Positions 536 through 30,810 of a stretch of DNA of 64,000 bases are shown piece after piece. Numbering within the stretch: position 1 is the stretch's first letter; each line of letters opens with the position of its first letter. A program made the position numbers and the translations under genes. The DNA lies in NCBI GenBank assembly GCA_004764695.1, contig SMSO01000005.1, positions 1,054,001 to 1,118,000 on the forward strand, written 5' to 3'. Source of the stretch: Schizochytrium sp. TIO01. Taxonomy: Eukaryota > Protista > Bigyra: Labyrinthulomycetes. Below the pieces are notes generated by a model. That model worked only from the letters and a program-made list of their open reading frames with translations, ran no database searches and was not told where the DNA came from.

Positions 536-1683
536 AATCGAGGTATTTAAGGTACTGATTCTACTGTTATAGTACCTTTCACTCTGATTGATTATCCTTA
601 TCCACATCCCTTTTCTACGTGAACTCCTATAGTAACTGTGTCCTCATTCTCTGCTTTAAATCCTTGTTATAAAATTCTTTTACCTTCTTCGTCTTTCGTT
701 TCGCATCAATCCTTTAGGTTAAGTTCTGACGTTCACGTGCGCATCACTTAACAGATATAAAGAAAACGTGCAAAAGTCAGAAAGTTGTTTTATTAATTTT
801 TTTGTTCATTTGGAGTTTCTTGCTCTTTTTATTATTATGAAAGGCACATATGTATTCTCGAACTCTTTCATGCCAGAACAGTGCATAGCTTTTAAAAAGG
901 TGATGGAAAATAAACTATGAATGCTCAACAATTTCTTGTAGTACTCGATGTTCACGAAAGCAATTCACATGCAACTGAGCGTTTACAATTTCCTTCATGA
1001 GTTAGTTCTCCATGCACGTTTCAAGGTCAGATTTATGCACTGCTAACTAGGCTTTATGCAGATCATAGCAAGTGCTTACTACTTCCGAATGACATTCCTG
1101 AATCGAGACCAAAACCAGCATAGCAGCACAGCTAAAGCACTCGAACCTCTGCTCGTATTTTTTTTTTGCATATTATTCGCCTCGATAGTATTATCTTTCC
1201 TTTAGGGTTGAAGTAAGACAAGGTTTTATAAGAAAACATAAAAGGGAAATACAAATGCACTTCAAAATGAGCGACGCTATTGGTAAACAGAATGCTTCAA
1301 GTCGCCAAATATTTGATTAAATCAACCCACCTCACATCCTTCTGCTTAATCGTGTTCAACCTACGCAGCAGTTGTTCTTAGTTCATTTAGCTGACCGGCC
1401 GCTGAGGTTAGCGATGCGATTGAATGCGACGAATTAACTTAGGCCTAAGACCAATACCTTGCTTGCTCTTGTTGTCTCACTTTTCTTTACTTTTAGTGCT
1501 GCTAGTACTACCACTAATGCTATTACTATTGTTCACCAATCATGACAGCAAAAAAGGATGAGAATGTCTCTTCCTACTATTATGCTTAAATAATAACATA
1601 CTATAGGCATCCTTGCTTCCAGTGCTTGTTTCAACACGAGTCGAATCGCGACAGAGTACGAAGTTGAAGAGATTGTTGCCAGA

Positions 1684-2943
1684 ATGCTTGCGGCGTCTAT
1701 GGCACCTCTTGGCAGACGCGTGCGCGACCTGGCCACAGTCCTGCGTGGCCCCACCTTTGAAAACAGTACTAGTACTGTCCAGAACAATGAGGATATGGGC
1801 ATCTGCGACGGCGAGGGCGTCCACGGCCATAACAACAACAATAACCTCAACCAGAAGAGCACTTCCACCACTGGTAGCAGCAACAACAATACCAACAGCA
1901 ACTTATATAATGTCAATGATTACAACGGCAGTGGCAACAATATCAGCAACAATCAACTCTACAATAATGGTCAAGGCGGGACCAGCGCAGAGAAGGCTGA
2001 CCTGAACAAGCTGGAGCCACCGCCGCTGGCCCTTGTGCTCGCCGACGGCCCTGAAAGTTTGCAGCCAGACTTCCTTGAGCACCTTTGGAATCTTGCTTCG
2101 CTCCGCGTGTGCGTGGACGGGGCTGCAAACTCCCTGCATGAGCAATATGGATCCCCACAGAAGTTATCCGCAGCGCACTTTACTCCAAACCTGATTATTG
2201 GCGACCAAGATTCCATTGATCCGCGTACGAGAGATCTTTTTGAAGCACGTGGCACTCGTGTGATGCACGTACCTGACCAAGATTCGCACGACTTGGAGAA
2301 AGCTTTACGCGCGATTGCAGAGCTACAAGAAGAGACGATGCCAGGTAAGAGGTTTATCGTGATTGTACTTGGCGCGACAGGTGGCCGTGTAGATCATCAG
2401 TTTGCAAACTTCAGTATGTTGTTCAAGTTTTATGACAAGTTTCATGATCTCTTCTTCCTCTCTGATCAAACACTCTCAATTCTTCTTATGCCTGGAGAGC
2501 ATATTATTGAAAGACCCGAGGAGATCATCGGACCCACGTGTGGACTGGCACCTCTTGCTGGACCTGCCTGCGTATCGACGACAGGTCTCAAGTGGAACCT
2601 GAGCAACCAAGTATTAGCGCTTGGGGGGCTTGTCAGCTCGTCTAACGAAATGCTAGGGTCTATTGCAACTGTGAAAACTGATAACGCCTTGCTGTGGTCT
2701 AGTGTTCCGCTTGGTCTCAAGGAGGATGATCTGGTTGATGCAAATGAAGAAATTGTTAATCATAAGTCAGCTCCCCTTTCTACAACAGGCTCATCGGCAT
2801 CTGCAAATAACTGTTTTGCACCAAGTGAATCGGTGACGATGTCAACGCCATCTACTATGATGGCAGGTTCGGTATCGCCGTCTTCCGCAGTAGTAACAGG
2901 AGTAGACTGTCACCAGGTGCAAGAGGAAAATCCTAGTAGCTAA
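1684..2943 (+). CDS. TPK1: Thiamine pyrophosphokinase
   Basis: Canonical TPK motifs: VCVDGAAN, IIGDQDSI, DQDSHDLEKAL, GATGGRVDHQFAN, CGLAPL, TTGLKWNL, GGLVSSSN. Asn-rich N-terminal and Ser-rich C-terminal extensions. Confidence 0.95.
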   Translation: MLAASMAPLGRRVRDLATVLRGPTFENSTSTVQNNEDMGICDGEGVHGHNNNNNLNQKSTSTTGSSNNNTNSNLYNVNDYNGSGNNISNNQLYNNGQGGTSAEKADLNKLEPPPLALVLADGPESLQPDFLEHLWNLASLRVCVDGAANSLHEQYGSPQKLSAAHFTPNLIIGDQDSIDPRTRDLFEARGTRVMHVPDQDSHDLEKALRAIAELQEETMPGKRFIVIVLGATGGRVDHQFANFSMLFKFYDKFHDLFFLSDQTLSILLMPGEHIIERPEEIIGPTCGLAPLAGPACVSTTGLKWNLSNQVLALGGLVSSSNEMLGSIATVKTDNALLWSSVPLGLKEDDLVDANEEIVNHKSAPLSTTGSSASANNCFAPSESVTMSTPSTMMAGSVSPSSAVVTGVDCHQVQEENPSS

Positions 2944-4547
2944 TGGTTGTGCGCAGGCAACACAGCAAATGTTATTACAAATGGCACAAACCAGGCTGCA
3001 AAGCATGCTGCCCCCATCAGGATCATGTTTATGTATAAAGGTTCATCCTTCTGCTGGAGTCCGGCCATGAGGATTGACAAGGGAATTGGCATGTACGCCG
3101 AGCTAGAAATTGGCGAGAAGTAGCTTCTTGAAAAACAACCAGACAATGCAGAACCAATGTACCCGGCCATATTGATTGCGTAGTGTTCATCCATGTATGG
3201 GTACGCGGCTTCGACCATGTCTCCAAAACACATATTAATTAAGAATCCCTTGCGAGCTAGTGCGTCACCCCGCCGCAGCCATACTGCAGCACATATACCG
3301 CATGAGACGCACACCAGGGTGCAAACATCAAAGAAACCAATTGTGCTAAAATCGCCATGTTCCATTTCTACCAAAATTAGCGGCAAGGCCACAGAGTGGT
3401 AGTACCCGGTCTTGCTACCTCGGCACATTAACATTCCGACAATTGCAAAAAACAACGTATCATAATAGTATACTGAGATTTCCATACTGTTGCTATGAAA
3501 CCTACCGAATGGGTCCTGCAGGAAGGCAATGCCAATGTCACGTACTGGAATAAGTACCAATGATAACAAGTTGCCTAGCAGCACGCCATAAAAGCTGCAA
3601 GCGACCGTCATAATGATAGAGCAAGCTGTGGCGGGTACATTAGCTCGAATAAGCCCAAACAAAACCCCGGGAAGAGCGTGCGCAAGCACCATTCCCACAA
3701 TGAGCCCTGCGATAATAGAGCCTGAACAAGCAAGTCCTGCAATAGCGCTTGTCAACAGTCCCAGCGATCCCATTGCTGGACCGGCACGTCCCTGGACCAC
3801 TGCAATACAACAAAGAGTAGGTAGGCAGTACTTTTGGAGAACCTCATCGAGAATAGGATTTTCCTGGTGTGTTAAGACCAAAAGGCGCCGCAAAACAGTT
3901 ACGGCAATAAATGCAGGGACAGTTGAGTCGAGAATCGATAAGAGTGAAGGTTTGGGCTGTCCAAAATCTGTGCTTGGGTTATATGTACGCCCCAGTGCGT
4001 TGGACAGCGCGTGAGTGTATGACACTGCTCTTGACATTGCCGTGGTGGAAACAGAACCACCTCCACCTACAAAGTTTGCACCAAGCTCCATGATGCGAGA
4101 CACTGAGGAGCCACCAGTTCCGGTCATAGGCACTTGCCGCTTGATACATTCCTCAAGCGCTCGGGCGTTTATATCAACCACATCTGAGCTTACTGTGATC
4201 ATTCCTGCACAAGCTTTAGACTTGCGAATCCATTCAGCAAGGATCTTGTCGTTTGACCGAGCTCGATCATTCACATCCTTGAGACTTCCTTGGTAGGTGC
4301 TTAGTCTAGCTTCTCCTGGCAGTCTTTTGAATAATATAGCAGGTGTACCAGGTCCCGCGTGGTCAAGACCCGTTCCGTCTGCAGTTGCAACAATCTGCAC
4401 TGCTCCTAGGCAAAGGCCTGCTGCCCCAAGTTGCTTCTCTAGCATAGCTACGAATGAGGCTGGGTCGCTATGGCCTTCTGTAGCGCCACCGCCACCACTA
4501 CTGCCAATAAGTACAATCTTTCTGTCATTGAGGTCTGACGTTGTCAT
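2940..4547 (-). CDS. Multi-pass membrane protein resembling bacterial PTS EIIC-type sugar permeases, with an N-terminal soluble alpha/beta domain
   Basis: Intact, intronless 535-aa ORF. The N-terminal ~190 aa are soluble (IVLIGSSGGG, PMTGTGGSS), followed by roughly 8-10 hydrophobic segments. GYYH..LPLILVEM and FGDMVEAAYPY resemble the EIIC His motif and GITEP/EGAIPF motif. The CDS is secure; the family is recognised by eye. Confidence 0.7.
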   Translation of the reverse strand: MTTSDLNDRKIVLIGSSGGGGATEGHSDPASFVAMLEKQLGAAGLCLGAVQIVATADGTGLDHAGPGTPAILFKRLPGEARLSTYQGSLKDVNDRARSNDKILAEWIRKSKACAGMITVSSDVVDINARALEECIKRQVPMTGTGGSSVSRIMELGANFVGGGGSVSTTAMSRAVSYTHALSNALGRTYNPSTDFGQPKPSLLSILDSTVPAFIAVTVLRRLLVLTHQENPILDEVLQKYCLPTLCCIAVVQGRAGPAMGSLGLLTSAIAGLACSGSIIAGLIVGMVLAHALPGVLFGLIRANVPATACSIIMTVACSFYGVLLGNLLSLVLIPVRDIGIAFLQDPFGRFHSNSMEISVYYYDTLFFAIVGMLMCRGSKTGYYHSVALPLILVEMEHGDFSTIGFFDVCTLVCVSCGICAAVWLRRGDALARKGFLINMCFGDMVEAAYPYMDEHYAINMAGYIGSALSGCFSRSYFSPISSSAYMPIPLSILMAGLQQKDEPLYINMILMGAACFAAWFVPFVITFAVLPAHNH

Positions 4548-6185
4548 GATGAACGCTACAGGTTTTTACTTTCCTTTTTTATTGTTTATGTGACTTCGGA
4601 CTGGATCTGGCGAGAATAATTCTAATGGACTTTTTAAAAAGCTAGCCGCTCTTGCAACAACCTAGGTATATATGTATAACCAAAGGATCCTCAGTTCTCA
4701 GCCTAGAAACCAAAAATGATAAGGGCTTTTCAACCTAAAATCAAACTCAACTCAAAATTATAGATTTCCAGCTCAGCTCTTGTCCTCAAACGATTGGCGT
4801 TTGTTTGACGAGTTGTGTCCGATTGTACTTGCTCCAATGAACCACACCGAAACCTCTTTGCTTGAAAAGTTTAGGAGCTCAATCTCAAGGATACTCGCTG
4901 AAGGATACTCGCTGGTTTCTGAATATTGCAACAGCGCTCAGGAAGGTGAAATAGTCAAAAACCACGAAGCTGGCGTATCCTTAGTCACGCACACTCAAGA
5001 GCAAACGATTAAGTTCTTGCAAAGTATAGCTTCCCTGCTCTCAGTTGACTCTGCTGATGCCAATTTGTAGGAGTGGGACTGTGGATAGATTTTAGTACCG
5101 CGTGCCATCTTAAAATTTAAAGATTTCAATTTATTATCTTTTAAGTTGATTTTTTTTTTTAATTAAAGAAAACATATCATCATGTTAACTATATTAATTA
5201 AAAAAGCTAAACTAAAAAGTAAAATTTGATAACTTGAGATGCGCCTGGGCAGAAAGGTTTAAGGCTTGGGCAAAAACGACCATACTCTTTCATCAGGGTG
5301 ATGCAGTTCGGAAATTCTTTTCTAAAGAACTTGACGTTGTTTACTTAATTGTAATCCTATAATGATATCTTTTGCGATGCTTTGAGGAAACAATCTTCTT
5401 TATTTATCTCTTCTTTCAATAACTCGAATGACTCGGCCAAAGCGAATTTGCTTGCAATGCCAACGATATATGTATCAGGTTGCTAGTTTAGCTCGTCTGT
5501 TTGCTGTTGTAGGGTTTCCAGCGCCAGGTTAAAGCCTGACTTTTGCTCAATTTTGTTTTGTATAATTCTCTTCTCGCACAAGTATTTCTACCACTGGTAT
5601 TTTGATGTTGTTTCATCATAACTACAAATAGAATGAACTACTGTATTGAAACATGCCAGCTTTCAAGAAGCCCTGGTTTTGAAAGTATGGGTTAGATATG
5701 CTTACAACCTGATAAACACTCGAGGTGCCTAAAGTTAAAAAGCCAGAAATAAAAATGAAGACAAGGAAAGATGATACAATGTGGCTACTTTGGTAGTTAG
5801 TTACCTTACCCTTATTGAAAATTTAAAATTCTTCGGTAAAAATATTCTGAAGAGGGTGGGCGTTATGGATTCTGATGCCATGTTCAGAGTACCAGCAGTA
5901 ATTTTTCACATTGACTTTCGCAAAACCTCTCAATAATTTGTGGCTCCTTTCTCCCTCGGGGGCCTCATTTCTAAACTCGATCAGGATTAAAATAATTAAA
6001 AAACTTTCAGGTTGTCTTTTTTATTTATTTATTTAATTTATTTTTTTCCCCCTAAAAATGGCCATTGACTATGATTGCTTGAGTGAATGGCAAAAGAAAA
6101 AAACAACCACGGTACAAATGCCAAACCGAAATAGGATCAATCAATCTCCACAAATACAAATTGATCAAACCCGGTGTCACAGGTC

Positions 6186-6857
6186 ATGTCTGCTCTAGAA
6201 GAGGGTGCTGAGGCGCGCCTGCGCACGCTACAGGCTGTTGAATCAGCTCTGCGGGCAGAGGTGACAGCAGCTCAAGCGGATCTGGCAGAGGTGAGCGCAC
6301 GGGTGCGAGCACCGCCGACATCTGGGCTCTCTGGGCCGGAAAAGGAGTATGAGCTTGCAAGATGCCGCGTTCGCGAAATAAACTCCAAGACCATTGCACA
6401 GCTCCGCGAAACTGAATATTTATTGGAGATGCAGCTTGAAGAGACACGGCAAAGAATTAAAAAACGTAAGAATGAAGACCATGATCTCAAGGCTCTCGTT
6501 GAAGAGCTCCAAAAGGACAGCGACTCTGAGGAAGCGAGAAATCTTGTGTCTGCAATATCTACTGAAGGGAATAATGCAAGCGCCCCCCCTACGATATCTC
6601 AAACTGCAGCAGATGAGAATGCAAAGCTGCAGCGCATTGCAAAGGTATTTCTGAACAACCACTTTAATGTACCTGGGGATGTTGGGTTTTGGAAACGATT
6701 TCTGCGCATGCCAGAATCAGTCACATTAGCAGGGGCAGATGATGCCACCAACGTTGTAAATAGTCTCCTTGCTTCGGGAGTATGCGTGGAACCGAATGAA
6801 GATGAAGAGGAGGATCTTCCACCTGTGGGCGCGAAGCGTTTTATGATTGTGCAATAA
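6186..6857 (+). CDS. Coiled-coil protein, possibly a divergent CENP-K (inner kinetochore)
   Basis: First ATG at 6186. N-terminal heptad pattern; the C-terminal VFLNNHFNVP and VNSLLASGVCVEPNED..RF resemble CENP-K FLxxHFPxP and LLRxGIAxxHPxD..R. Confidence 0.55.
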   Translation: MSALEEGAEARLRTLQAVESALRAEVTAAQADLAEVSARVRAPPTSGLSGPEKEYELARCRVREINSKTIAQLRETEYLLEMQLEETRQRIKKRKNEDHDLKALVEELQKDSDSEEARNLVSAISTEGNNASAPPTISQTAADENAKLQRIAKVFLNNHFNVPGDVGFWKRFLRMPESVTLAGADDATNVVNSLLASGVCVEPNEDEEEDLPPVGAKRFMIVQ

Positions 6858-7235: not shown

Positions 7236-8921
7236 TCAATTTGTTTCCATGATATTGCCATAAGCATAAACACCGGCGCAATCCATAGTAGCTTCAAGCT
7301 GTGGCGCGCGATGATCAGCGGCAATAAGCTTTACGCAAAGAAGACGAGCGACTCGAGGTTCTTCAAATTGAAGTTCGAGCCGTTGAATTGCCGAGCCTCG
7401 GGGCAAACAAAACCAGGCTGCGGGGTACAAAGCTGCATCCAACTGCTTAGGTTCTGGTCTTTCAAAAATGATGATACACGCTGAGTCTTGCAATGTTTGA
7501 ATTTCTTCAATGGGAGGCAAGACGCCTTGGCTCGAAAGATGCTGCACCTGTGCTAAACTCGTCAAGTCTGTAAAAGCAGATACCATTGCTGCTGCTTTTA
7601 GCTCCTGGATTTCTCTCGCAAGAGAGTCTGCAGCATCTTGCCCCTCTGGAACTCGACTAGCTGTCTCAAGCTTGATCACATCACACCCTAAAAAAACTGC
7701 AGCACATCGAACTGGGCTTGCAAGATCCATAGTGCGATCAATTACCAAGCGATGCAGTATTGCGTAAGATTGCACACGAGATCGACTCAAAAACGTTACG
7801 GGACGAACAACCTCAGGGTATTCTCTATCTTGAGCATGGTTGGAGTGAAATGCGTCTTGGAAAACCATCTTAGTACCTTTCATTGAGGTTTTATTTGTTG
7901 GGTTACGCGCCTTACGATCTTCAAGCTCTAACCTCTTGGATAATTTGCGTTGGAGCATGTATAGGCCTTGACGGTATTTCCCTACACTTTGTTGCTCTGA
8001 ATCAGGCAAAGCGCATTTTTTTTGTTTCATTGCTAGTAAACTTTGTACTCCAGACGAGCTCTGCATAATACGAAGGAACATCTTCTCAAGTTCATACGTT
8101 GTTACACTTGCGTCAAGCCGAGATGAGTGGCCAGGTAGACTTGGAAAGAAACCCTGGAGGCATGCCGAAAGAGCTGCAAATCGTCTGTTTTCTTCTCGTT
8201 CGATTGAATTCTCCTTGTTCAGCGATTCATTGTGCTGCATAATGGTTTGCTCATGTGTAGTGAATGACAAAATTCCGCATAAAAATACATTTGAGGCTTT
8301 TGCACTACAATAAAAGTTTCTATTGTCCGGTCGAAAGACAACGCCAGCCCAACACCGTTCTAAAGGTCCTCCACCTGGCGTGTGGCCTCCATCAGTATAG
8401 AATCCAGAAAAATTAATTGCATTGCAGTTGACTCTGCTTAGCTTCATGCATCGTTGCCAGCCATTTGGAGAAAGCAAGATACTTCTACGTATGGCATATT
8501 TCCGGTCTCGTACTTCCGTGTATAGTTTAACGCGTGTCACACTGCGTTGCAATGGGCCGTATTCACTAGCCATTAATTGTCGTAGATAAATGCGTTTCCA
8601 AAGTTGCTCATCTTGGGCGGCACAATGCAAATATCTGCAGACTAAACACAGGTTAGCAAGATCCGCAGCACATGTCACTACATAAGACAGTATCTCGCGA
8701 AGAATCTCAGAAGGTTGATGAATTATAGAATTCAGACGCGACTTCATAGCCGAGTCGTCTGCAAGAGTAGTTGTAGCAAGACTTGAATCCTCTTGGAAAA
8801 CATAACTTTGCTTGCAGACCGATCTTTCGGTGAAATATTCACAGCCTTCTGCGTCATAGAAATACTCTGCATCGGTAAACCCTAGACTTCGCAACACGCC
8901 ATTGTGCGTGAACAACATCAT
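7236..8921 (-). CDS. F-box protein with a probable beta-sandwich C-terminal region
   Basis: 561-aa ORF. F-box consensus IHQPSEILREILSYV..DLANLCLVCRYLHCAAQDEQLWKRIY at about 8726-8586. Confidence 0.85.
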   Translation of the reverse strand: MMLFTHNGVLRSLGFTDAEYFYDAEGCEYFTERSVCKQSYVFQEDSSLATTTLADDSAMKSRLNSIIHQPSEILREILSYVVTCAADLANLCLVCRYLHCAAQDEQLWKRIYLRQLMASEYGPLQRSVTRVKLYTEVRDRKYAIRRSILLSPNGWQRCMKLSRVNCNAINFSGFYTDGGHTPGGGPLERCWAGVVFRPDNRNFYCSAKASNVFLCGILSFTTHEQTIMQHNESLNKENSIEREENRRFAALSACLQGFFPSLPGHSSRLDASVTTYELEKMFLRIMQSSSGVQSLLAMKQKKCALPDSEQQSVGKYRQGLYMLQRKLSKRLELEDRKARNPTNKTSMKGTKMVFQDAFHSNHAQDREYPEVVRPVTFLSRSRVQSYAILHRLVIDRTMDLASPVRCAAVFLGCDVIKLETASRVPEGQDAADSLAREIQELKAAAMVSAFTDLTSLAQVQHLSSQGVLPPIEEIQTLQDSACIIIFERPEPKQLDAALYPAAWFCLPRGSAIQRLELQFEEPRVARLLCVKLIAADHRAPQLEATMDCAGVYAYGNIMETN

Positions 8922-10180: not shown

Positions 10181-12954
10181 TTATTCTCGCGTCATGATGC
10201 ATTTTGAGGGGTCTCTCAGAGCCTCAAAAACGGAAATTATGTGCGTCCTTTCAAAACATTAGCAACATGAAATGCAGTAGCAGCTACACATTGACTATGG
10301 TAGCATACTGTGATTGATGCAGTGTGCTGTGTTTGCTCTTGAGAGTCTGACGTTGACCCTCAAACTTTGTTAGCAATTGGACAGACATTTCGGAGATGTG
10401 ATGGTCATTTTCGCAGCAGACATGAAAATAACAGGTATCGAAAAGATTCTCCTCACTACTATATTATGTCATTGGAAGATCCACTCGTAGAGTTACTTAG
10501 GTACCTAGTACCTTACTAAGCTAGCTAGTATGGAGAGACGAGGTCAACTAGAACTAAGATAGTAATCTTTTATCTTATTTTAGAATTGAAGACTGGGGCA
10601 GAAATATTTTCGAAAGCGTACCCTGCGATGCAATTCGCGAATCCTTGCAGTCCCTGGCACTTCACAGTGCAGTCAACGATACCTTACTACCCATACAGGC
10701 CGAAACTTGTACGTTGCAGAGTAGCAACAGAGGGGAGTCCTTGTAGGTAGATAGGTCAGGCAACAATCGCTCGCGAAGATCCTGGAGACCTTCCGGCAAG
10801 GGCCTTTGCACCTTACGAAGACGAAAAGACTGAGCCGTACACGTTTCTGGTGCGAAGAGGCAGGAGATCTTTATACAAACTGCATAGCGGCTGTCTTATT
10901 TGAGAAGGTAGAGACGACTGAAATTGAGATAATCTGTGGCTGCGACGTGTAGTCTGTGGCAATTGTGGAGACTATCATTTTGGAATCTAAGTTTGCCCCT
11001 GTCAAACACACTACGCGAATTTTCGAGAGCGCCGTGCAAGGCCAGTCGATCCTGGATACACCCGACTGAGGGATTGAGAAGGTTCTTTCGCTTGCTCTGT
11101 GCACCCTGTGGTCATCGTTGATCTATCTTTGGGGAGCGCGGAACCTGCCGGCGAGTGCAGGCGGTCACAAGGAACCTGCTTTGCAGCTGACTGTGAAATT
11201 GACCTCAGCAAATCTCTAACTCATCGAAGTTGAACTGGCGTGGATTCTCCATAGTCTGCAAGTAAGTACCTGATATAGGCAACCACGCCTCACCTCGCGT
11301 CACCAAACAAATCACGCCATCCATCAATCAAAAGTCAACGAGATTTGACAAAGCGCCTTTCCTATTAAAATCCTGCAGTTCATTGGAGCCATAGCTCTGC
11401 TAGCCTCTTTCAGGATTCACCATCGCTCTAGTCTAGTCAGTTGTCTCTAAGGCTATCCTTCAAAGAGCGACGAGCTGTCAACTCGGTGCGGATCTAGGGC
11501 TCCGAAGTCACCACAACACTGGGACCCCAAGGCGTGCCATAGAAGTTCCGCAGAACCTCTCATTGTACCCAGCTCCAAGCTTGCCTTCTTTCTCTGTTGC
11601 CTCCATCGTTTTCTCTCCCCCGGCCAAGCCAACGCAGTACCTCGTGGTTTCAAGATTTCATCTGCCGTTCCAGCGAGCGCAATCGACTGGCTAGCGAAGC
11701 CAGCAGCACCTCCAGTTCACAGGCGAAAGGGGTTGTGAGCGTCTTCTGGTATAGACCATCTGTCCTCATCGATCTCTCTCAGAGCAACTCCCGGGTTGGC
11801 CACATAAACCTCATCTTTCTCACAAGTGTTAATTTTCATTTGTTCTAAATTTAAAACCGCCAAACAGGGAAGAAGTATAGGAAGCAGGAGTATCTCAGGA
11901 GTAGGGACCAGCCGGAACAGAACGCGGCAGAAAGAACGGAGGCCATTGGAACGGCACGAAAGGGAACGGAGCGTCGATCGATCATTGAAGATTTGTTCAT
12001 TCATTCATTCGTTGCCGGCAGGCGTTGAGAGCGTGCGAGGCGCCGCCCAAGCCGCATCCACGCCCGGTCTCACAGGCGAGTAGGCAGGCAGGCAGCCAGC
12101 CAGTGGCGGAGGGCGCCGAGCTTACAAGAGGCCGTGCCTTGCCGAGGAGCAACGCAGCAGGAAGCGGGCTCGAACGCGGCGCCACCTGCGCAGTGTATCA
12201 ACTAGCCGCTGAGCAGAGCAGCAGAAGTGGGACTTCCACCCAAAGGTTCCCTCGAGCATCCTGAGCAGGCAAGCAAGCAGGCAAGCAAGCAGCTCCAGCA
12301 GGCCCGCGACTGCTCAAGCTCGCTCTCGAGCGCTCGACCTCGACGTCACTCGCTCGAATTGGCTCTGCTCTGCGCTCAACTTTCTGTACGTACGTACGTA
12401 CATACGGATTGAAGTGCTCATAAATAATCTTCGCAACCGGCCGCTGGCTAGGCCTCGCTAGGCAGAACCGCTAGCGCTTGGAGCGCCGGGCGTTCCGTTC
12501 CGCGTTCCGGAGTGACTATTGTGGAGCGGGTAGGGAGGCGCTAGGGAGTGCTAGGCGGAAGAACCAGCTGCTTGCTGCCTTCTTCTTTGGTGGCGGCAGT
12601 AGAGGAGGGGTTCTGGGTTCTGGGGTGTGGCTTTGATTGGCTGGAGGTGCGTGGCAGGCGAGCTTCGTGCGGGAAACCTCACGGGGTGACGGTTTGGGCG
12701 TGGTGGTTGCGGCCGTGGAGGTGGTAACCAGGGAGGGAGCCAATAGGCGAGGAACCGAGGCACAGAAGAGAACGACAGGATAAGGAGGAAAAAAAAGAGA
12801 AGAAAATTGAAGAAAAAGAAAATACTTCGGCGGGTAGGGAGTGCCTAGGTAACTGCTATTTGGTAGGTACCTGTATTGAGATTGAGATTGAGAAAGGGTT
12901 TCGAAGAACGGCACTAGAGAACGCGAATTTGCGGAGAATTAGAACAGACAGAAA

Positions 12955-13042
12955 CAATCGATCAAACGATCAATCAAACAATCAATCAAACAATCAAACA
13001 ATCGAACGAACGGACGAACGGACGAACGGACGAACGAACGGA
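12955..13042. repeat. Compound microsatellite: (CAATCAAA)n followed by (GAAC/GGAC)n
   Basis: Directly visible. Confidence 0.85.
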
Positions 13043-13919
13043 CGCCACAAGAAAGAATCTCACCGTGCAAACCAAGCTAGAAATCAGACAAGAAGGACCT
13101 GGCCGCAGGCTGCAGGCTGCGCTCACAATTGTCGTAGCAGAGGTCTCTGAGAGCTGGAAGCATAGGAAGAAGTCCTGCTCAATTCGAAGTTTTCTATTTC
13201 TCGTAATCTTTTCTCTAACAAAAGCCAACTAAGTAAGAGAAGGTGAGCGAGACGCCATAGTAGCCAAGGGAATAGCAAGTCGCGGGTTGAGAAAGGAAGG
13301 CAAGGCAAGGAAAGGCGGAGAGCGCCACAAACCCGCGCGTGGAGGACAGCGAGAGCTGTACTGAGAGCGTCGGATACGGCGATAGATCAGGGAGGGCTGG
13401 GCATGGGCGTGCCCTGGTAGGCGATAGGAACCTCGCCACGTGTAGAGCAGCCGTCGGGGGTCCCGACAGCACGCTCGCCGTTTTTGCGTAGTAAATAGCT
13501 GGCTAGCTATATCCTAGAACTGCTTATCCGCGACCTTTGACTTAACCCGCCGCACCTCGTCGACTCAAATCGTGAGCGAGGTGAGGAACCGCGGAAAAGC
13601 GCACCAGAAGCTCATCTTCGAATTGTATTTACTGCGGTCATTAGAGTCCCGCGCCTGGCTCATCTGCTGTACGGCTTGGCACGCGTGCCTAACCTTCCGT
13701 CGAATCTCAATTTTCAAAAATCTGCCTCGGTAACGCTCTGCATCAACCCATCAGAACCCTGCGAGGTTCCTGGAGCCCTCGGCATCCTCGTGAGGCGGCC
13801 CCGTAGGCAAAACCAAGCGGCCCGCGGCGGCCCGCAGAGGGTCTTTGGCGCGGGCCCCGGTTCGGCATCGGCAGAGCCGTTGCGGTATCTATCTTCAAAG
13901 ACCATCCCTTGCCTTGGCG

Positions 13920-16900
13920 ATGGAGCCCGAACTAAAGCAGCTGTTGCTCAAGGATGGCCTCGTGCTTGGCCCACAAATTGGGCAGGGTAGCTTCGGAACA
14001 GTGTTTAGGTGCACAGATGTGAAGACTCAAATCGCATATGCGGTGAAAAAGGTGGACCTGAGGGTCCTCCGCATGCAACCGCATTTCATGATGGAACGGC
14101 TAAAGCGTGAGTGCTCAGTGCTGCAGAATCTCAATCACCCTTCAGTGATCAGGCTTTACAAAGTAATTGAAGCACAGGATGCACTTCTCATGGTAATGGA
14201 AATGGTTCTTGGTATGGAGCTCTTTGAGATGATCCTCGCTGTCTCAGGTCTGGATGAGGGAGAGGCATGCGCTGTCTTCATTCAGCTAGCATCAGCGCTC
14301 GCGTACATGCATAACCTGGGTATCGTTCACAGAGATATCAAACCAGAAAATATTTTAGTTCAAGGATCTACGAGCACAGAGGCAGAGACTGACCGCGCAG
14401 GGATTGTCTTCCAAGACGCGTTCAAACACCTCAGACCGCGCGTTAAACTTATCGACTTTGGACTTAGCAAGGTACTTGGCTCAGACAGAGGGGGGTCCAT
14501 GGCAAAGAGTCTTGTAGGCACACCGAGGTATGTGGCGCCGGAGATCATTGAGGTAGGAGAACGCATGCGCAATCAGACACGAACATTGGGAGAGGCGCCG
14601 CCACCGCACTTGGACAGATCGTTCTATAGCGAAAAGGTAGACTGCTACTCGACAGGAGTCCTGCTGCACGTGACTCTCTCTGCATGCTTTCCTCAGTTTG
14701 AGGCGGGCCAGCGTGTTATTTTCTCGGACCAGCGTATTGCAAGAGTCTCTAACTCGGCCAAAGACCTGATTGCTCATCTCATGGATCCAAACCCCAATAC
14801 GCGATACTCTATTGTGCAGGCTCTCAGACATCCATGGGTGGTCAAGCACCACCCAAGGGCTGCTCAGGCTGCCCTTACCATTGCAAATGTGCAATGTCCT
14901 CCGAGTCCAGAGGCTTCGCCGATGAACTCACCTTCACAGTCACCTACAGCTGGTCCTTTTCCGCATGGACCAATGCGTATCAGCGTGGTGGACCATATGA
15001 ACGGAGCACTCTCACCCGAGAACAGCTCACAGGACGTGACGATGGACTCCGCTCCGTCGGTCACTACACCTCCCCCTCGTGGCGATGCTGGGAGTAGGGG
15101 CAGCACCAAGAGTGCACCAACACCTAACTACAATTATTCCACACCGACCAATACTGGCGCGAACAAAAAGGGGGGATCAAATGGCCATAGCGCTGATGTG
15201 GATCGCTTCATGGACAAGGTCTCTGCTGCAGCTGCAGAGTTTGATCGTATGACCAGCTCAACATCTATGGAGTCCCTGCAGTTGGATCAGTCTACTGAAG
15301 ATGTTTCGCAGAAGACTAGCAATGCTTACCATGGTGACCGTATCACTGGCATGAAGCGGCAAATTTCAAGGCCAGCACCTCGTAACGCAAGCCAGACTGG
15401 AAGTGAACTTTTGGAGGGTACCATGTATGGAAGAGTGGGGGGAAATCTACGGACTCGGAATGAATCCGATGCCTCAACACGGTCAAACTCCAAATCCTCC
15501 ATCGAAATCCTTAACCTTCCTGGTGGGGCTGCCAAGGGCGTATGGGGTCCTCTGAAGGAGGCTAGCTCCCGCGCAGGTAGCATTAGCTCAGAAGCTGATT
15601 CAAGCAGTACTAGTGGTAACGACTCCCCCCCCGCTGACTCTCCTTTGGGTAGTGATGCTGGTTTTTCGTATGGCCAATCCAGCACATCATCGCATCGCTC
15701 ACCACGTGCGCATTCTGGTACAGGCACGCAGCAACATCAGCATCACCATGTTGGAGCTGCTGCACATTCTCATGCACAAGAACAGCCTAAGCAACAGCAA
15801 CAACATCAACAACAACAACAATCGCATACTCAACAGCAAGAACCTCAATATACTGGTGGAAGCCTAGTGCCGCGCCCTCCCGTGGATGTTGTGAATGTGG
15901 AAATACCTACGGGGGAGAACAACGCTATCATCAACCCAGATCTGTTGCTGCAGTTGCAGACTCAAATCGCCCAGTGCTTCCGGCAGTCTTTTGATGCATT
16001 TAAAGATGATGATGTGGTATCGCCTGGAATTGTTTCCAGTGCAGTGGCTAGCCGAGAGCTCCTTGGCGCCTCACAAACAATTTTAAAGAAGCTTGAGCAG
16101 ACCTCAATTTCTGTCACAGATCTACTGCCGGACATGCAAATTGCCGTTGAAGAAGGTGAATTTGGCATGGCGGTGCAATGTTTTGATACAATTAAGGAAT
16201 GGATTCGCGGAATTCAAAATGAATCCCAAGATCTCCTCAAGGCGAACGTCAAGGTTATTGCCGCAGTCAACAATACCCTACAGCTGGCGCGCCGCCGACA
16301 TCGCGTGCTTGCTGCCGCCGCAGCTGGTTACCGCGTGTCAGATGCAGTGGCTCTGGAAAAGAGCAACATGCGAGCGAGTATTCATCCATCGACCCCACTT
16401 CGCTCATCCGGAACTGGGGCTAGTGCTGGCGCAGTGGAGGCAGCCGAGCAGGGTCAAATGGAATCAACCAAGGCTCTCGAGCGTCAGGAGCAGGCCAAGA
16501 TGGATCTTGAGACCTCGGACTACAAGGAGTCATTAAGTGACCAGCGTAAACTTGCTCGTGAGCAACGGAAGAACGAGCGTGCTTTGGAAGAGCAAATTCA
16601 AGCATATAACGAGGAGATTGCCTCGGCCAACCGTCGCAATGCCGCTCGGCGCAAGGCAGAAGAGGAGGAGAGCCCAGATGCTTCTGCAATTGTTCCTGGC
16701 AATTTTGGTGTAGTAAGCATCGAAAGTAATATTGAGAACGACGTCGACATGGATGCCGACGAACTCGAGCCTATTAGTAAGGCCCTCGCCATGCTGAAAG
16801 AGATCGACCGCCTCTTGCAAAAGCATGCATCATTCTGGTCCCACATGGAAGTAGTGGTTGATGTTTTGCTACAACGTGCGAACCACGTGGAAACCATGGT

Positions 16901-19891: not shown

Positions 19892-22800
19892 ATGGCACCT
19901 GCCACGAGCGGGCCAGAGTTCGCAGACGCTGGGCCTAACACCGAGTCGGCGACAACTTCAACATCCACAATAACGACATCGACGACGGCAATAAGGACGG
20001 GGAAAAGTGCTTCAGAAAGTAAGGTCAAAGATAAAGACGAATATGATACGAGAGGCAAAAATGACGAACACATCAAAATAACCAAACGAAATAGCGATGG
20101 CGGAGCCACTGAAGAGGATTCGACAAAAATCACTGCCGAGGAGAGCGCCGGCAAGAGAGCCAAGGACAAAGTCAACGCGAAAGACTCTGAATCGAGAAGT
20201 GGCGCCGATGACGATGCCAAGCCCGATTCTGAAGACATCGTGAAAATTAAGGCCGAAAATAACCATGGGGATGGTGGGCCCAAAGACAATGTCAATGGTG
20301 AAGAAGATAATGACACCATGGATAAAGGTAGCCGCGAAGAGGCCGAAAAGGTTGACGTGGAGAAGTTGCAGCAGCTGGATCTAGAAAAACTAGACGTAAC
20401 AGAACTTGTTCGTTACAAAGATATGGCACAAAGAAGAATACATGAACTGGCGCCAGTTTCGACACAGAGGATTGGCAAGACTCAAGATGATGTGCGCATG
20501 AATACAGCACACTGGGCATACTTGCTGCAGGAGATGGCGTGGATGGCAGAAGACTTCAAAAAAGAGCGTGGGTGGAAGCAAAAGCAGCAGAAGATTATTG
20601 TAAAGTCGGCCTTGAGGCAACGCGAAAAGATGTTCAATAAAGACCTACAAAACTCAATTGTTATGCGCAAAACGGCCAAGAAGATCTGTGCCAAAGTCGC
20701 GAGAGAGGTACGGACATTCTGGGAGAAGGTTGACCGCATCGTGGTCTATAAGTACAAGACCGAGTTTTATGCGCGACAACAGGCAGCCATGGACAAACAT
20801 CTTAATTTCCTCGTGGACCAGACAGAACGCTATTCGAACCTTCTCGCTACAAAACTCCGCCACGAAGCCCAGGAAGACGAACGCCGCTACATAGCCAAAA
20901 GTCCCGCAAGCTCCCGCACAGGTTTCGCTAGCGAACGGAGTGATGAGGGTGAGGAGGAATCGGGTGACGACCAGGACCATGAGGAGGATGAAGATGAAGA
21001 TGAAGATTATGGCGATCGCAGCGTGCCGAGCTCGCAAGCGTCTAGTGCAGGGGATGCACTCGTGGACGACCAAAGCTCGGCACCCTCACAAACCTATTCT
21101 TCAGGACGTGGTAGGTCACAACGGCGTCGTCGACGTACCACTGCAGGGTTTCTTGAGAATCGAAGTGACGACGGCCATGATCAGAGAGAAAACATTAAAG
21201 ATGATGAATACGAAATCAAAGCACGGGATAGTGATGCTGAGTCTCGAGAGTCATTTACGTCCATGTTGTACAAAAATTCATACAAGCGCCCTCGGCCTCG
21301 TGGGCGTGGGACCCATCACTCTGCTGCTAACATTCGAGACAGTGACGAGGATGAGGAGGAGGATTGGGAGGAGAGTGATGCAGAAAACGCACAAGATGAC
21401 GAAACAACCATTGAAAAGACCGGAGAAGGAACGGCTGAGGATAATGCTTTAGAATTGGAAGCGCTTCGAAGAGAAAGTGAAATGTCTCGCGAGGAACTTT
21501 TGCGTCTATATGGGTATCCTCAAGAGATTGCTGCGACTTCTTCCACGGCTGTGATGCTTGATTCCAGAGTTCGTAAACATGGAAAGGACAAACAATCTGA
21601 TGCTTCTGGCGACGAAGATAACAGTGATGAAAACGAGGATCTAGATTGGGAGGGAGACGAGGAGGAGGATAATGAAGAGACACTCGATGCTGAAGGAGAG
21701 CCTTCTCGGCAGGTGCTAGATTCTGAGCTTGACCAACTGAAAGCAGAAGGCGAAATGTCTTTGGAGGAACTTCGCGCAATGTATGGAATTCAAGCTCAGG
21801 CAGTTGAGGAGGATGAAAATCCGATCTCCAGACAACACCAAAGTACGTCCAGCGCGGAGATGAGTGGTAAATTGCCTAAGCACAAACCGAACAGCGACGA
21901 CGAAAGCGATAGTGACATTGACTTTGTTGCACGCGAAGAAGAAGATAATGAAGAAACCCTTGATCAAGAAGGCGAGCAAACTGCCACAGAAAACAAACAG
22001 GAGCTGGATGATCTTAGAGAGGAAGCGGAGATGTCAGTGGAAGAACTGCGTCGCAAGTATGGTCTTGCAGACGAAACCCAATCCAATCATAATTCTGATA
22101 GCGACCAAGACTTCGTAGCTGAGGACGAAGAAGATAACGAGGAGACTCTTGAACAAGAAGGTGAGCAAACTGCGACAGAAAACAAACAAGAGCTCGACGA
22201 TCTTAGAGAGGAAGCGGAGATGTCAGTGGAAGAACTGCGTCGCAAGTATGGTCTTGCAGACGAAACCCAATCCAATCATAATTCTGATAGCGACCAAGAC
22301 TTCGTAGCTGAGGACGAAGAAGATAACGAGGAGACTCTTGAACAAGAAGGTGAGCAAACAGCTATGGAAAATCAGAAGGAGCTCGATGATCTGAAAGAAG
22401 AAGCGGACATGTCTGTGGAAGAACTACGCCGCAAGTATGGCCTTGTCGATGCTGCGCCATCTTCTTCCATTAATGCCAAAAGCAACAAAGACGATGAAAT
22501 GGATAGTGACCAAGACTATGTTGCTCTGGAAGAAGAAGACAATGAGGAGACTCTTGAAGCAGAGGGCGAGCAAACCGCTACGGAGAACAAACAAGAGCTC
22601 GACGACCTTCAAGAGGAAGCAGAGATGTCTGTGGAAGAACTGCGCCGCAAATATGGTCTTGCAGACGAAACCCAATCCAATCATAATTCTGATAGCGACC
22701 AAGACTTTGAAGCTGAGGATGAAGAAGATAATGAAGAGACTCTTGAGGAGGAAGGTGAGCAAACTGCTACAGAAAATAAGCAGGAGCTCGATGATCTCAA

Positions 22801-25800: not shown

Positions 25801-28800
25801 TCCGTCACCCACGCCAAGCACTGCTGCAGACTCCAAAGCAGGTGGTGACGGTCCTGGTGAGGATGTAGTGGAAGGTGAAACAGAAGATGGTGGTGAAAAT
25901 GGAGGTGTCGAATCTGCAGAAGCGGGCATGACTCAAGATCAACTTAAGGAGATTGAAGCAAGGTTAGAAAAAGTTGAACGCTTAGCCATCACCTTTCGCA
26001 TGTACTGGTTTCCCGTCGTAGATACTCTCTCTGCACGTCTTGAAATGCAAGCCATGGAAGAGGCACAACAACAGACCTGGGAAATGGAAAAGCTGGAGGC
26101 CGAGCGGGAGGAAATGGAAGACGATGCAGAGGAGGAGCTCATAATGGCAACTGATGGAAGTAAATTTGATGTTAGCTCTTACCATGCTGCGAAAAATGCA
26201 ATTACAAACGCAAAGCGCATTCGTTTGATGACTGGTAAAGACTGGCACGAATATAAAACCCCCTTTGGCCGTGCATATTATCATAATCGGGAGACAATGG
26301 AGACAACCTGGGAGCAGCCAGCTATTCTCCGAGCTATGCATAATATTAAGCAAGCTCGTCGTCATGGTTGGTCTCGTTTGGTTCCAGATGTCCTAGTACG
26401 CGTTATGCACTTTTTGGAGTCTCCCGAGGAACGGTTCAACGTAGGGCGAGCTTGTAAACGGTGGCTGCGTGCTTCTCGACACCCAACATTGCATATTTGG
26501 GTTTCAAATGTTTCTGATGTATTGCAAGCAGAGAATGTGACAAACGCTCCCTTTCTGAAAGATTGGATTAGCGTTGGCACTCAGGTTGAAACGTTGTATC
26601 AGTCTGGTGAGATTTGGTACCCTGGTATTGTTACTGATGTGGCATCTGACGGGACCTACGAAGTGACTTACACTGATGGGTTTGTGGAGCCAGGTTTGCG
26701 AAGATCGATGATGCGAGTTGACTCCGGAATTCGCTACAACTTTATCAATCCAGAAGATGAAGCTACAAGCCCGTACGGCGTATACAGTAAACATCATGTT
26801 GGCCGCCTTGGCCTGGGCCCGCGCTTACCAGACCCTAAGCAAGTAAACACTCTGGAGGAAGCCCTTTCGCTTGCCAAGCCTGGTCAAGTTATTGTACTGC
26901 GTGCTGGTCTTCACCGTGCAAATACAAGCAAACTCTCTATCAAACGTTGTGTTCGCATTGTAGGAGAAAGATTTTTTGCAGAAGCTTCTGGTATCCGAAG
27001 CCGTGCAATGGCAGTATACGCGATGTTACCTTCGTCTCCTGCTGGTTTAACTCGGGCTCGGGCTCGGTCCTCTTCATCAGGCAGTGCAGATCTTGGTCCT
27101 GATCTTACAACAACTATGACTGCAAGCCCAACCAATGCCCTGGAGTCTAGCTCCTCTACAGTCATTCGATTGAAGCGACAGCTATCAGCATCATCTCTTG
27201 CGGACATAAAGAGACAACCTAAACAGCCTCCTGCCGTGGAAGTCATCGGCGTAGAAAGTACAGATAATGACTGCCTTGAGCTCCGACGAAGCATGCAAAC
27301 CTTAGAAGAAAAGGCTTGCGAAGACGATGTACAGGTGCGCTCACCCGTAGCTGAAGCGAACCGCAAGATGGACAAACACATAATGTGGGCGCACCCCCAG
27401 CAGACTGCAATTGAATGTTCAAGCTGTTCGGCCTTAACTCTTGATGTTGAGGGTCAGATAATGATCCAAGGCATCGTCGTGATGCAAGAGCGTGCTCTGA
27501 TGAAACCCGAGGTGAAACCTTTCAGCAGCGTTTGCATCTCGGGCAAGACCCAAGCCATGTTTGCGGATTGTACAATCTCCCATATGTTTGGGTTTGGCAG
27601 TGCAGTTTCTGTGTGCAGTGATGATGTTGTGGCATTCTTTTTGCGAAGCACTGTGTGCAGTGCGTCTGCATATGGACTCTTCCAGGACCATGGAGCTCTG
27701 GTAATGATAGCTTCTGAAGTTTGTAACAATGGGCTAAGCGGCATTGGGATTAAGGAGGGACTTCTCCTGGTGGAAAGGTCACGTATTCACGGTAATGGTG
27801 AGTCCGCTGTTGATATTCTCGGTGCAAGCTCTGTAGTGCGTTTACAAGGTAATGATTTGCGTAAAAACGGTGACCGGCCCATTCACTTTACCGTAGATAT
27901 GGCAGAAGATCTTTTGAGCATTTCCAATAATCTTCTTGGAGATAAAGAGCGACGATTTCGTGGAGAAGATCCATGGGTTTCCGCTGCAGACCGCTTGAAA
28001 GAATGGCGTGCGGGTCTTTCTCAACGCATGAAACGCAAAGTAGCAGACGAGCGCAAAGCACGGCGAGCTGCCGCTGCACAGGCGAAAGTATATGCACGCA
28101 TGCATTTGGAGCTCCATGCGCGTTTGAATGCTCGCCCGAAACGTAAATCAGCCCCCACGGACCTCTCGGAATCTGTTCTTGCTGGAAGAACTGGAGGTGA
28201 CGACCCGTTGGCAAAGAAACGAAAGAAGACGAGTTTGGGTGAGCAATCGTTAACTGAAGACGGCGCTGAATCTGGACAACAGAATGGATCTGAGCTGGTA
28301 ACAAGTGACGAGAAAGATGCCCAAGAAGATCTGCAATCCGTGGAATCCAGAAAGAAGACCTCTGCTAAAGATAGCCATAAGACAACGCAGACTGAAGAAG
28401 AAGGCAAGGGGTTAGAAGCTACCTCAAGCCCTAAAACGAGTTCGCTTGCTCTTTCTTCTACAAGCAGTGCTGAAGTCGAGAAAGACTTGGAGAATGAAAC
28501 CCAGAAGACTGAGTTGAAGACAAAGACACCTATGGAGGGGGACACCAAAGATGATGGCTTGTCAGAAAGAAAGATTCTGTCAACAGAAGATGAATGCTCT
28601 GCAATTCACAAAGAAAACAAGAAAAACGAGCCTGAATCATTGGCGCCACCAAAGAAGTCAATGCGCACAAAGAAGGAGGGAGACGATAGTAAGGAGCCCA
28701 GTCAAAGCCTGCCAAGATCGTCGAAGAAGAGGAAGGTTGGGTCTCCCGTGAAAGAAAAGGATACCAATGAGGAAGAAGATGAAGTGAAATCCATTTCAAA

Positions 28801-29830: not shown

Positions 29831-30810
29831 GAAATGAATTGATAACTCTGGTGAAGAAAACCATCATGTATTACTGCAAAATAATGAAATCAAGACAAAT
29901 TCTATCTACTATCATAGTAGGTACTTCCATCATTTTTTCTTTTCTACAAGGTCAGTGCCTGGCCAGGTGCATGCATACATGATAAATACACTACCTAACT
30001 CTAAATAAGTTTGTGATTGTAAAACTCGGCACCTCTCCCCGCCTGCGACAAATGTGAATCAGCTGCATGATTTGAAATTAGAAATGTGCATTTGGTCAAG
30101 AGAAAAGACTTACTCTAATTCAATATAAAGCAGAAGCCATATTCGGATAAGTAAGTCTTTCTACTCGGAGTCTGGGGAAACCTCAAGTAATTAGACTTTG
30201 AGGCAGGCGCTCTTCGTTGGGGCAGCGAGACTCAAAGCCATTGCAAGATAGGGACTCGGGAGCAGAAACCTTGCGAAACCAGAATCTTTGAACACAACGA
30301 CAGCAGGAATGCATGCACCCAGCTAGGCACCTGGGTGGGTTGCGTGTAGTTTCTCAAGGTACGTACGTAGTAGGTTAGCAGGTGTCTGTCTGCCTACATT
30401 GTGGCAGATAGCTAGCTAGCTGCGTACCAAGTGTCGCTTATCCGCGCAGGTCTTTGTCCTTTCTAGCTGTTGAGCTAGTTCCTATTGCCTTAGCCATAGG
30501 TAGCACTCACTACCCAGTCTTTCAGAATCACAGATTCTTGGTAGTAGCAGCAGTGTAATAGGCTACCACACTTGTGGCTCGCGGGTGGCGTCAGATCCAG
30601 ATTTCACAAGCAAGCGCCTTTGGAGCCTTTGGAGCCTTTTCGGAGTCGTCTTCGAAGTCTTCGAAGTCTTGGTTTTGCAGAGGCTTGCTTAGCTGCCGCG
30701 AGCTCGAGACCTGCACAGAAGCACAGCATTGACAGGCAGGCAGCACAGTCAGTCGATCGTTGGCTGCTGACTTGCGAGCTTGCTGGGTTTGCCGTCAACG
30801 TAGGCGAGTA

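Follow-up and report, generated by a model that had tools for sequence, protein, structure and literature searches.

A eukaryotic locus with an EIIC-like gene

The stretch of DNA analysed here at its full length of 64,000 nucleotides (the window) comes from the protist Schizochytrium sp. TIO01 and covers positions 1054001-1118000 of contig SMSO01000005.1, in an assembly of 64 Mb and 37 contigs. Near its start lies a gene whose product resembles EIIC, the permease of the bacterial phosphoenolpyruvate (PEP)-dependent phosphotransferase system (PTS), preceded in the protein by a soluble N-terminal domain (Table 1). The ORF listing of the window gives a single open reading frame (ORF) starting with ATG for this protein, closed 5' of the ATG by an in-frame TAA 18 nt upstream, and a whole-genome search found one copy of the gene. 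It sits more than 1 Mb (1.05 Mb) into a large contig and is flanked on both sides by genes of eukaryotic type, encoding a thiamin pyrophosphokinase (TPK1) and an F-box protein. TPK1 and the EIIC-like gene are convergent, with the TAA of the former (2941-2943) having two bases in common with the TAG of the latter. The GC content of the EIIC-like gene (0.49 overall; 0.46 at third codon positions) is inside the range of the neighbouring genes.

Table 1. Positions of the EIIC-like gene, its parts, its neighbours and the bacterial partner genes
Feature	Position	Strand	Basis or remark
EIIC-like gene, complete intronless coding sequence	2940..4547	-	535 aa; TAG stop at 2940-2942
Probable 5' leader of the EIIC-like gene	4548..5054	-	RNA-like contig ends between 4914 and 5054
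N-terminal alpha/beta domain (aa 1-195), predicted cytosolic	3963..4547	-	Family-specific, flavodoxin/Rossmann-like
Gly-rich loop 1, GSSGGG (aa 15-20)	4488..4505	-	After strand beta-1; IGSSGGG is aa 14-20
Gly-rich loop 2, GTGGSS (aa 143-148)	4104..4121	-	G143, G145, G146 and S148 invariant or nearly so in all groups
Conserved polar stretch of the N-terminal domain	4029..4364	-	D62, N93, D100, S120, D122, N127, G164, T168, R173; invariant alignment columns
Predicted EIIC-fold membrane domain (aa 198-535)	2943..3956	-	VIA-align structure match, family HMM
Modelled homodimer interface, within aa 208-326 (first membrane helices, scaffold part)	3570..3926	-	Complex prediction
GYYH (aa 381-384)	3396..3407	-	H384, putative counterpart of the EIIC pocket histidine (PtsG H212)
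FGDMVEAAYPY (aa 441-451)	3195..3227	-	Putative counterpart of the GITEP hairpin motif
TPK1 gene	1684-2943	+	PF04263 and PF04265; neighbour of the EIIC-like gene
F-box protein gene	7236-8921	-	Family match; flanks the EIIC-like gene
TIM-barrel partner loci in bacteria	L009:7030-7869, L028:1837-2676, L032:9603-10448		And 13 further bacterial loci

The membrane domain is a predicted EIIC fold

A full-length AlphaFold2 (AF2) model of the protein, built on 40 relatives, gave a mean local confidence (pLDDT) of 92 and a predicted template modelling score (pTM) of 0.89. The EIIC superfamily is recognised by a ten-helix elevator fold with two re-entrant hairpins, and structure comparison places the model in it. 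We used VIA-align to compare the model with 48,161 PDB representatives, and residues 198-535 matched four EIIC structures: E. coli IICB-Glc PtsG (8qsr; Z 17.6, 310 residues aligned, root-mean-square deviation 4.5), B. cereus MalT (6bvg; Z 17.0), V. cholerae IIC-Glc (9lgt; Z 16.5) and ChbC (3qnq; Z 13.7). Between 306 and 314 residues were aligned in these four, and all other folds scored Z 9.7 or less and concerned the N-terminal domain. Foldseek searches with the whole model likewise returned PTS permeases as the best matches. ChbC, from the lactose/chitobiose family, shares the superfamily fold at a greater distance. With the closer glucose-family structures, PtsG, MalT and V. cholerae IIC-Glc (PF02378; TCDB 4.A.1), the likeness extends over about 310 residues of membrane fold and to detectable sequence homology.

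This homology becomes visible at the level of the family. With a hidden Markov model (HMM) built from 54 bacterial relatives, four canonical EIIBC proteins encoded in the same genomes scored 43.8, 36.4, 30.7 and 29.7 bits. Ten of these 54 relatives weakly match PF02378 (best E 8.3e-7) and no other membrane family, one matches TIGR01996 over the whole IIC part (E 3.7e-7), and the family profiles retrieve no PDB sequence other than ChbC (E 0.03-0.05). By hhalign the probability was 4.9% against PtsG alone and 2.1% against a four-sequence glucose-family alignment; the His motif was aligned nonetheless. The window protein itself gave no match to PF02378 (PTS_EIIC) even at E<=1, the gathering threshold of that family being 30.7 bits. 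On the model and the family profiles taken together, residues 198-535 are best described as a divergent EIIC fold from the glucose-glucoside branch.

The residues that line the substrate pocket in EIIC also have apparent counterparts here. In PtsG, E298 and H212 hold OH-6 of glucose, which is the group that becomes phosphorylated (PMC11393339). Profile alignments place H384 of the window protein, in GYYH, opposite H212 in the GLHH of PtsG and opposite the His of 'GL-HW' in Bgl/Scr-type EIIC. In glucose-family EIIC the pocket histidine (PtsG H211/H212) opens the hairpin-1b helix, and H384 corresponds to it; a Glu-bearing G-x-x-x-E motif is the putative counterpart of the hairpin-2 motif. The four groups into which the relatives fall retain H384 in 31/32, 10/10, 41/42 and 19/19 sequences, and Y383 is found in 31/32 sequences of the clade that contains the window protein and 41/42 of the bacterial clade. 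For the second motif, the HMM alignment sets G-t-f-v-e-a-a-Y opposite G-I-T-E-P-A-I-Y. The family form is G-[DT]-[FM]-[VI]-E, and an ungapped alignment pairs E446 with the Pro of GITEP, a single residue past the canonical Glu. Every group conserves G442 and E446, and together with Y383 and H384 they persist in almost all of about 100 relatives.

Two copies of residues 196-535 were predicted to form a symmetric dimer through the N-terminal helices, as in glucose-family EIIC, with at least 93% of contacts common to three runs and a partner pLDDT of at least 72. The dimer scored 0.41 compared with 0.01 for the best control, a score that may come from the model's memory of solved EIIC dimers. In a benchmark of dimer prediction, 21 of 30 solved homodimers attained the score mark, and none of 23 monomers did.

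The locus had been read from its letters alone in an original prediction, as an intact, intronless 535-aa ORF embedded among eukaryotic genes and bearing an EIIC-type membrane domain. The ORF listing, the upstream TAA and the two neighbours bear out the first part, and the structure search and family HMM the second, with glucose-superfamily EIIC proteins at the top. All four motifs named there (IGSSGGG, GTGGSS, GYYH and FGDMVEAAYPY) are found at the expected residues and prove invariant or nearly so over about 100 relatives; the His and Glu motifs singled out are the ones that alignments and per-clade counts identify as conserved.

A family-specific N-terminal domain

Modelled alone, the N-terminal domain is a three-layer alpha/beta structure (AF2 pLDDT 89.5, pTM 0.88). 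The glycine-rich loops and several polar residues of this domain are strongly conserved: the window protein's clade has GSSGG in 32/32 sequences and the bacterial clade in 42/42, and the wider set of GSSGG, D62, N93, S120, G-x-G-G-x-S and G164 stands at 32/32 and at least 41/42 respectively. Mean identity within the window protein's clade is 48% for the N-terminal domain and 48.5% for the membrane domain. The bacterial relatives carry the same domain in the same place, and by alignment it comes with the family in bacteria and is no eukaryotic addition. None of the protist homologues has an N-terminal signal or transit peptide and the domain starts at or near the N-terminus; it should therefore be cytosolic, like EIIB in IIB-IIC permeases. 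The linker between the domains is confidently placed in the full-length model (pTM 0.89), which suggests that the two are docked in a fixed arrangement.

The fold itself points to no single family. The best matches of the domain are generic, at Z 8-9.8, and comprise flavodoxin-like proteins, single lobes of periplasmic binding proteins (PBP) and LacI, and uroporphyrinogen synthase. A Pfam search with the window protein assigned the domain to no family, the ESM Atlas held no named look-alike, a PDB sequence search gave nothing significant (best E 0.068), and a profile search recovered solely fragments of the same family. A minority of family members show weak Peripla_BP_4 or DAGK_cat matches here; for Peripla_BP_4 these amount to 8/30 members at E>=1.5e-4 in one set and 4/54 members (best E 1.5e-6) in another, at Z ~9 in structure.

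Two named candidates were rejected for this domain. The type I PBP/LacI fold has two lobes, and the resemblance covers one (Z 8-9.4, 117-132 residues aligned), with weak Peripla_BP_4 matches in a minority of members. A known EIIB is ruled out. The domain is like EIIB of the Glc, Chb/Lac, Man and Gat types in being a cytosolic three-layer alpha/beta unit placed N-terminal to EIIC, with a glycine-rich loop after strand 1; unlike EIIB, however, it has no conserved Cys or His phospho-acceptor and no EIIB Pfam match, and no EIIB structure occurs among the top 50 matches.

PTS components are not found in the genome

Six-frame profile searches were made of the 64-Mb genome, and the same searches gave matches in 5 to 7 of 14 control genomes. 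Neither EI (PF05524) nor HPr (PF00381) was matched in the protist genome, compared with matches in 7/14 control genomes. EIIA (PF00358, PF00359) and EIIB (PF00367, PF02302) were not matched either, the mannose-type families lying outside the search, and canonical EIIC (PF02378) gave no six-frame match. By Pfam the window protein itself contains no EIIA or EIIB domain. In a genome without EI, HPr, EIIA and EIIB, the EIIC-like protein has to function independently of the PEP phosphorelay. That eukaryotes lack the PTS is still the position of recent literature (PMC13106763).

Expression and constraint

Matching stretches were found in 24 public sequencing runs from 9 studies, and contigs of 4 runs (4 studies) were aligned to the window. 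Per run, one contig piece joins TPK1 and the EIIC-like gene, starting at 1475-1795 and ending at 4914-5054, and no contig has a joint over the EIIC-like gene. The interval 5055-6150 has no contig cover in any of the four, a gap that by itself proves nothing, and the next piece begins at ~6160-6200, where the next ORF starts. This is the pattern of transcriptome assemblies, which argues for intronless transcription of the EIIC-like gene; the gene thus appears to be transcribed, and without an intron. Since these RNA-like contigs join TPK1 and the EIIC-like gene, the 3' ends of both must overlap. A diatom relative is also present in the MMETSP transcriptome collection.

One strain variant differs at 14 sites of the ORF, 11 of which are synonymous and 3 conservative non-synonymous, and the gene is under purifying selection. 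The variant (two runs) also carries a 19-nt insertion behind 4580 in the 5' leader, and ~23 substitutions over 1633-5037.

The contigs starting at ~6160-6200 do so in 4/4 runs, at the start of a coiled-coil ORF of 227 aa on the plus strand (6174-6857) that has no family match and appears to be expressed. Elsewhere in the window, at 12001-14000, 20001-22000 and 28001-30000, GC content peaks locally (0.57) and AT skew is strong (0.30) in the composition profile.

The family in bacteria and protists

An exhaustive HMMER search returned 329 cluster representatives, 208 of them at E<=1e-10 and 71 at E<=1e-30. A pattern scan of species-representative bacterial genomes found relatives in 145 stretches, mostly from Bacillota, with some from Actinomycetota, Chloroflexota, Planctomycetota, Spirochaetota and Mycoplasmatota; the scan patterns were of Bacillota type, so that other prokaryotic lineages may be under-sampled. 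The bacterial members are automatically named 'PTS sugar transporter' by NCBI (for example Sporolactobacillus WP_093673450.1 and Fastidiosipila sanguinis WP_106012651.1). They resemble the window protein end to end in architecture, at 25-31% identity, with the same invariant residues in both domains, and we know of no characterised member of this two-domain family. A partial homologue labelled Salmonella enterica (P0369; 160 member sequences) is ~58% identical to Bacillaceae/Paenibacillaceae versions and could reflect contamination or transfer. Among eukaryotes, members occur in the labyrinthulomycete Hondaea fermentalgiana, the diatom Epithemia clementina (on a 565-kb contig), MMETSP transcripts, Phaeothamnion confervicola, the diplonemid Namystynia karyoxenos and one EukProt entry. 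Some diatom relatives have long insertions and reach 600-750 aa.

We built a tree of 103 sequences by a quick search, many of its rows being without a taxon label, and left it unrooted with respect to canonical EIIC because identity to the latter is just 11-14%. All 32 named bacterial rows form one clade (support by the SH-like approximate likelihood ratio test, SH-aLRT, 100). The four named eukaryotic rows lie across that branch from the bacteria, and Phaeothamnion and Namystynia also fall outside the bacterial clade. The window protein belongs to a clade of 32 rows together with diatom sequences (SH-aLRT 96). The tree shows the gene to be old and widespread in protists and no recent import. 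An old transfer is plausible, the unrooted tree giving no direction for it; since the EIIC superfamily at large belongs to bacteria, parsimony favours an origin there.

These results bear unevenly on the original prediction, which had proposed a horizontally acquired EIIC permease working without EI, HPr and EIIA, and had named nesting within bacteria and spread across stramenopiles as things to check. Bacterial homologues exist, among them named NCBI proteins and those of the pattern scan; homology searches found stramenopile relatives in labyrinthulomycetes, diatoms and Phaeothamnion; and searches of the genome gave no match to EI, HPr, EIIA or EIIB (mannose-type EIIA and EIIB families lying outside them). 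The suspicion of a contaminant, raised at the same time, does not agree with a single-copy gene inside a large contig that is apparently expressed, to judge from RNA-like contigs. Horizontal acquisition survives as a plausible transfer, but one that is neither recent nor private to this organism, since diatoms, Phaeothamnion, a diplonemid and other labyrinthulomycetes share the gene. Nesting within bacteria was not recovered, the named eukaryotes lying across one strongly supported branch from the bacteria sampled. The interpretation as a whole is thus partly supported.

Gene context in bacteria

About half of the bacterial family genes stand alone. At 16 loci the family gene adjoins, nearly always directly upstream of it, a gene for a 279-aa TIM barrel. 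The counterpart of this barrel in the PDB is 4ML9, listed as an 'uncharacterized protein' (E 3.9e-137), and the barrel bears a weak phosphate-binding-barrel likeness to ThiE/TenI, class II aldolases, HisA and hexulose-6-phosphate synthase. Sources variously name this partner 'histidine biosynthesis protein', 'cyclase' or 'thiamine phosphate synthase'. It is present in 13/30 bacterial host genomes and was not found in the genome of this protist. A GntR/UTRA regulator often follows the barrel, or a DeoR regulator precedes it; regulators of these kinds often sense sugar phosphates. No EIIA, EIIB or HPr gene occurs among 45 further operon members at the bacterial loci, and Rfam identified no riboswitch upstream of the family gene in eight of the loci.

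Genes of histidine or imidazole metabolism recur beside the bacterial homologues (L002:9697-11172, L016:6328-7902, L028:3780-4370), a histidine-ammonia-lyase-like gene in Sporolactobacillus and Nesterenkonia and imidazoleglycerol-phosphate dehydratase in Lachnospiraceae, and these neighbours may hint at the substrate. A link to thiamine, prompted by TPK1 next door and by a bacterial barrel that sometimes passes TMP-TENI, was rejected: the motif is a generic phosphate-binding one and the barrel is absent here.

Discussion

We consider it probable that the EIIC-like gene encodes a homodimeric elevator-type transporter, in which a divergent EIIC is fused to a family-specific alpha/beta N-domain and which operates independently of the PTS. 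The cytosolic N-terminus of the transporter would be permanently fused to the alpha/beta domain. Its pocket would keep the His, plus the Glu shifted by one position, both of which in canonical EIIC hold the hydroxyl to be phosphorylated, and the retained His and shifted Glu suggest a small hydroxylated solute, sugar- or polyol-like. The N-domain would take EIIB's place in IIB-IIC permeases and, with its two glycine-rich loops and invariant Ser, Asp, Asn, Thr and Arg, would most likely form a site for an anion or a phosphoryl group, at which the substrate is captured, modified or gated on the cytosolic side. Because the N-domain is as conserved as the membrane domain in eukaryotes that lack a PTS, it is likely to be an integral working part of the protein. 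That this is a real gene, that it has an EIIC fold with remote homology and conserved residues, that the PTS is absent and that the family is widely spread are established points.

Several observations nevertheless weigh against this reading. The window protein alone matches nothing in Pfam or NCBIfam and no PDB sequence usefully. E446, as aligned, is offset by one residue from the glutamate of GITEP (PtsG E298). The N-domain has no standout fold match and no Foldseek match at E<=0.001, and residues 1-195 lack both a Walker-type motif and any conserved Cys or His. EI is present in 28/30 and HPr in 29/30 of the bacterial host genomes; the PTS may thus still feed the bacterial members, and the role of those in eukaryotes could have changed. 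The RNA nature of the public runs is a guess (label 'RNA?'). Finally, we infer that the protein transports, which class of substrate it takes, what the N-domain does and in which membrane it sits. Transport and binding are likewise putative for the family as a whole, and the terms 'phosphate-binding' for the N-domain and 'uptake route' for the protein go beyond the fold and family matches, none of which assigns a function.

Unlike glucose-family EIIC, the window protein falls below the Pfam threshold and has its Glu one residue later than in GITEP; its gene is nuclear and eukaryotic, has no fused or nearby EIIB with the phospho-acceptor Cys, and encodes a different N-terminal domain. Unlike the bacterial two-domain proteins, which form a separate well-supported clade in hosts with EI and HPr, often in an operon with a 4ML9-type barrel and GntR/UTRA regulator, it stands in a genome with neither PTS nor barrel. 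The N-domain resembles flavodoxin-like proteins and type I PBP lobes at Z 8-9.8.

More than one role can be proposed for the N-domain. It may be a new phosphoryl-transfer module that acts as a kinase or as a phosphocarrier, with ATP, PEP or some other small molecule as its donor. Such a module would phosphorylate the substrate on its way out of the EIIC pocket, thereby replacing EIIA and EIIB. We regard such built-in group translocation as possible but rather unlikely. The N-domain is at EIIB's position and confidently docked in the model, its invariant glycine-rich loops with Ser, Thr and Arg are typical of phosphate sites, and the acceptor-holding His and Glu are kept; in bacteria, a phosphate-binding barrel of the 4ML9 family is a partner in 13/30 hosts, GntR/UTRA and DeoR regulators lie nearby, and the operons have yielded no EIIA, EIIB or HPr genes. 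However, the N-domain matches no kinase or phosphocarrier fold or family and lacks a conserved His or Cys, the barrel is missing from this genome, and EI and HPr are nearly always found in the bacterial hosts. It is an equally tentative proposal that the family as a whole performs self-contained, PTS-independent group translocation, and that replacement of EIIA and EIIB by the N-domain let EIIC leave bacteria and spread through marine protists, namely labyrinthulomycetes, diatoms, other ochrophytes and diplonemids.

Alternatively, the protein may be a plain facilitator or secondary carrier that moves its solute unmodified, with the N-domain as a ligand-sensing or gating head, and we hold this too to be a doubtful but serious candidate. 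It would suit a protist genome that has neither a PTS nor the bacterial barrel, and the closest weak likeness of the N-domain is to one lobe of sugar-binding PBP/LacI proteins. A single lobe cannot, however, make a PBP-type cleft, and the invariant Ser, Asp, Asn and Arg look more catalytic than sensing. Whatever probability these two alternatives leave goes to other chemistries and to a sensor or transceptor role, in which transport was lost and an external solute is reported to the cell. Once the phosphorelay was lost, the protein could have become available for signalling, and some diatom relatives have long insertions; but conservation of the pocket residues and of the whole elevator architecture is as strong as in bacteria and no signalling domain is attached, and we think this role improbable. 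A contaminant, mis-assembly, pseudogene or ordinary eukaryotic transporter is very improbable indeed and is taken to be refuted, given a gene of host-like composition 1.05 Mb inside its contig between eukaryotic genes, a stop overlapping that of TPK1 by two bases, the same joined piece in contigs from four studies, strain differences that are synonymous at 11 sites as against 3, and fold searches topped by PTS EIIC proteins only.

Full-text literature searches found no description of EIIC-fold proteins in eukaryotes, nor of this family. The divergent EIIC transporter that we favour would mean that an EIIC-fold protein is encoded by a conserved and apparently expressed nuclear gene in diatoms and thraustochytrid-like labyrinthulomycetes, protists of ecological and industrial weight, always joined to the N-terminal domain and unaccompanied by the phosphorelay. 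It also offers a handle on an uncharacterised bacterial family whose automatic name is 'PTS sugar transporter'. In osmotrophic protists the protein is a candidate route of nutrient uptake, and the protists that carry it may be seen as a natural experiment on what EIIC is capable of without EI, HPr, EIIA and EIIB.

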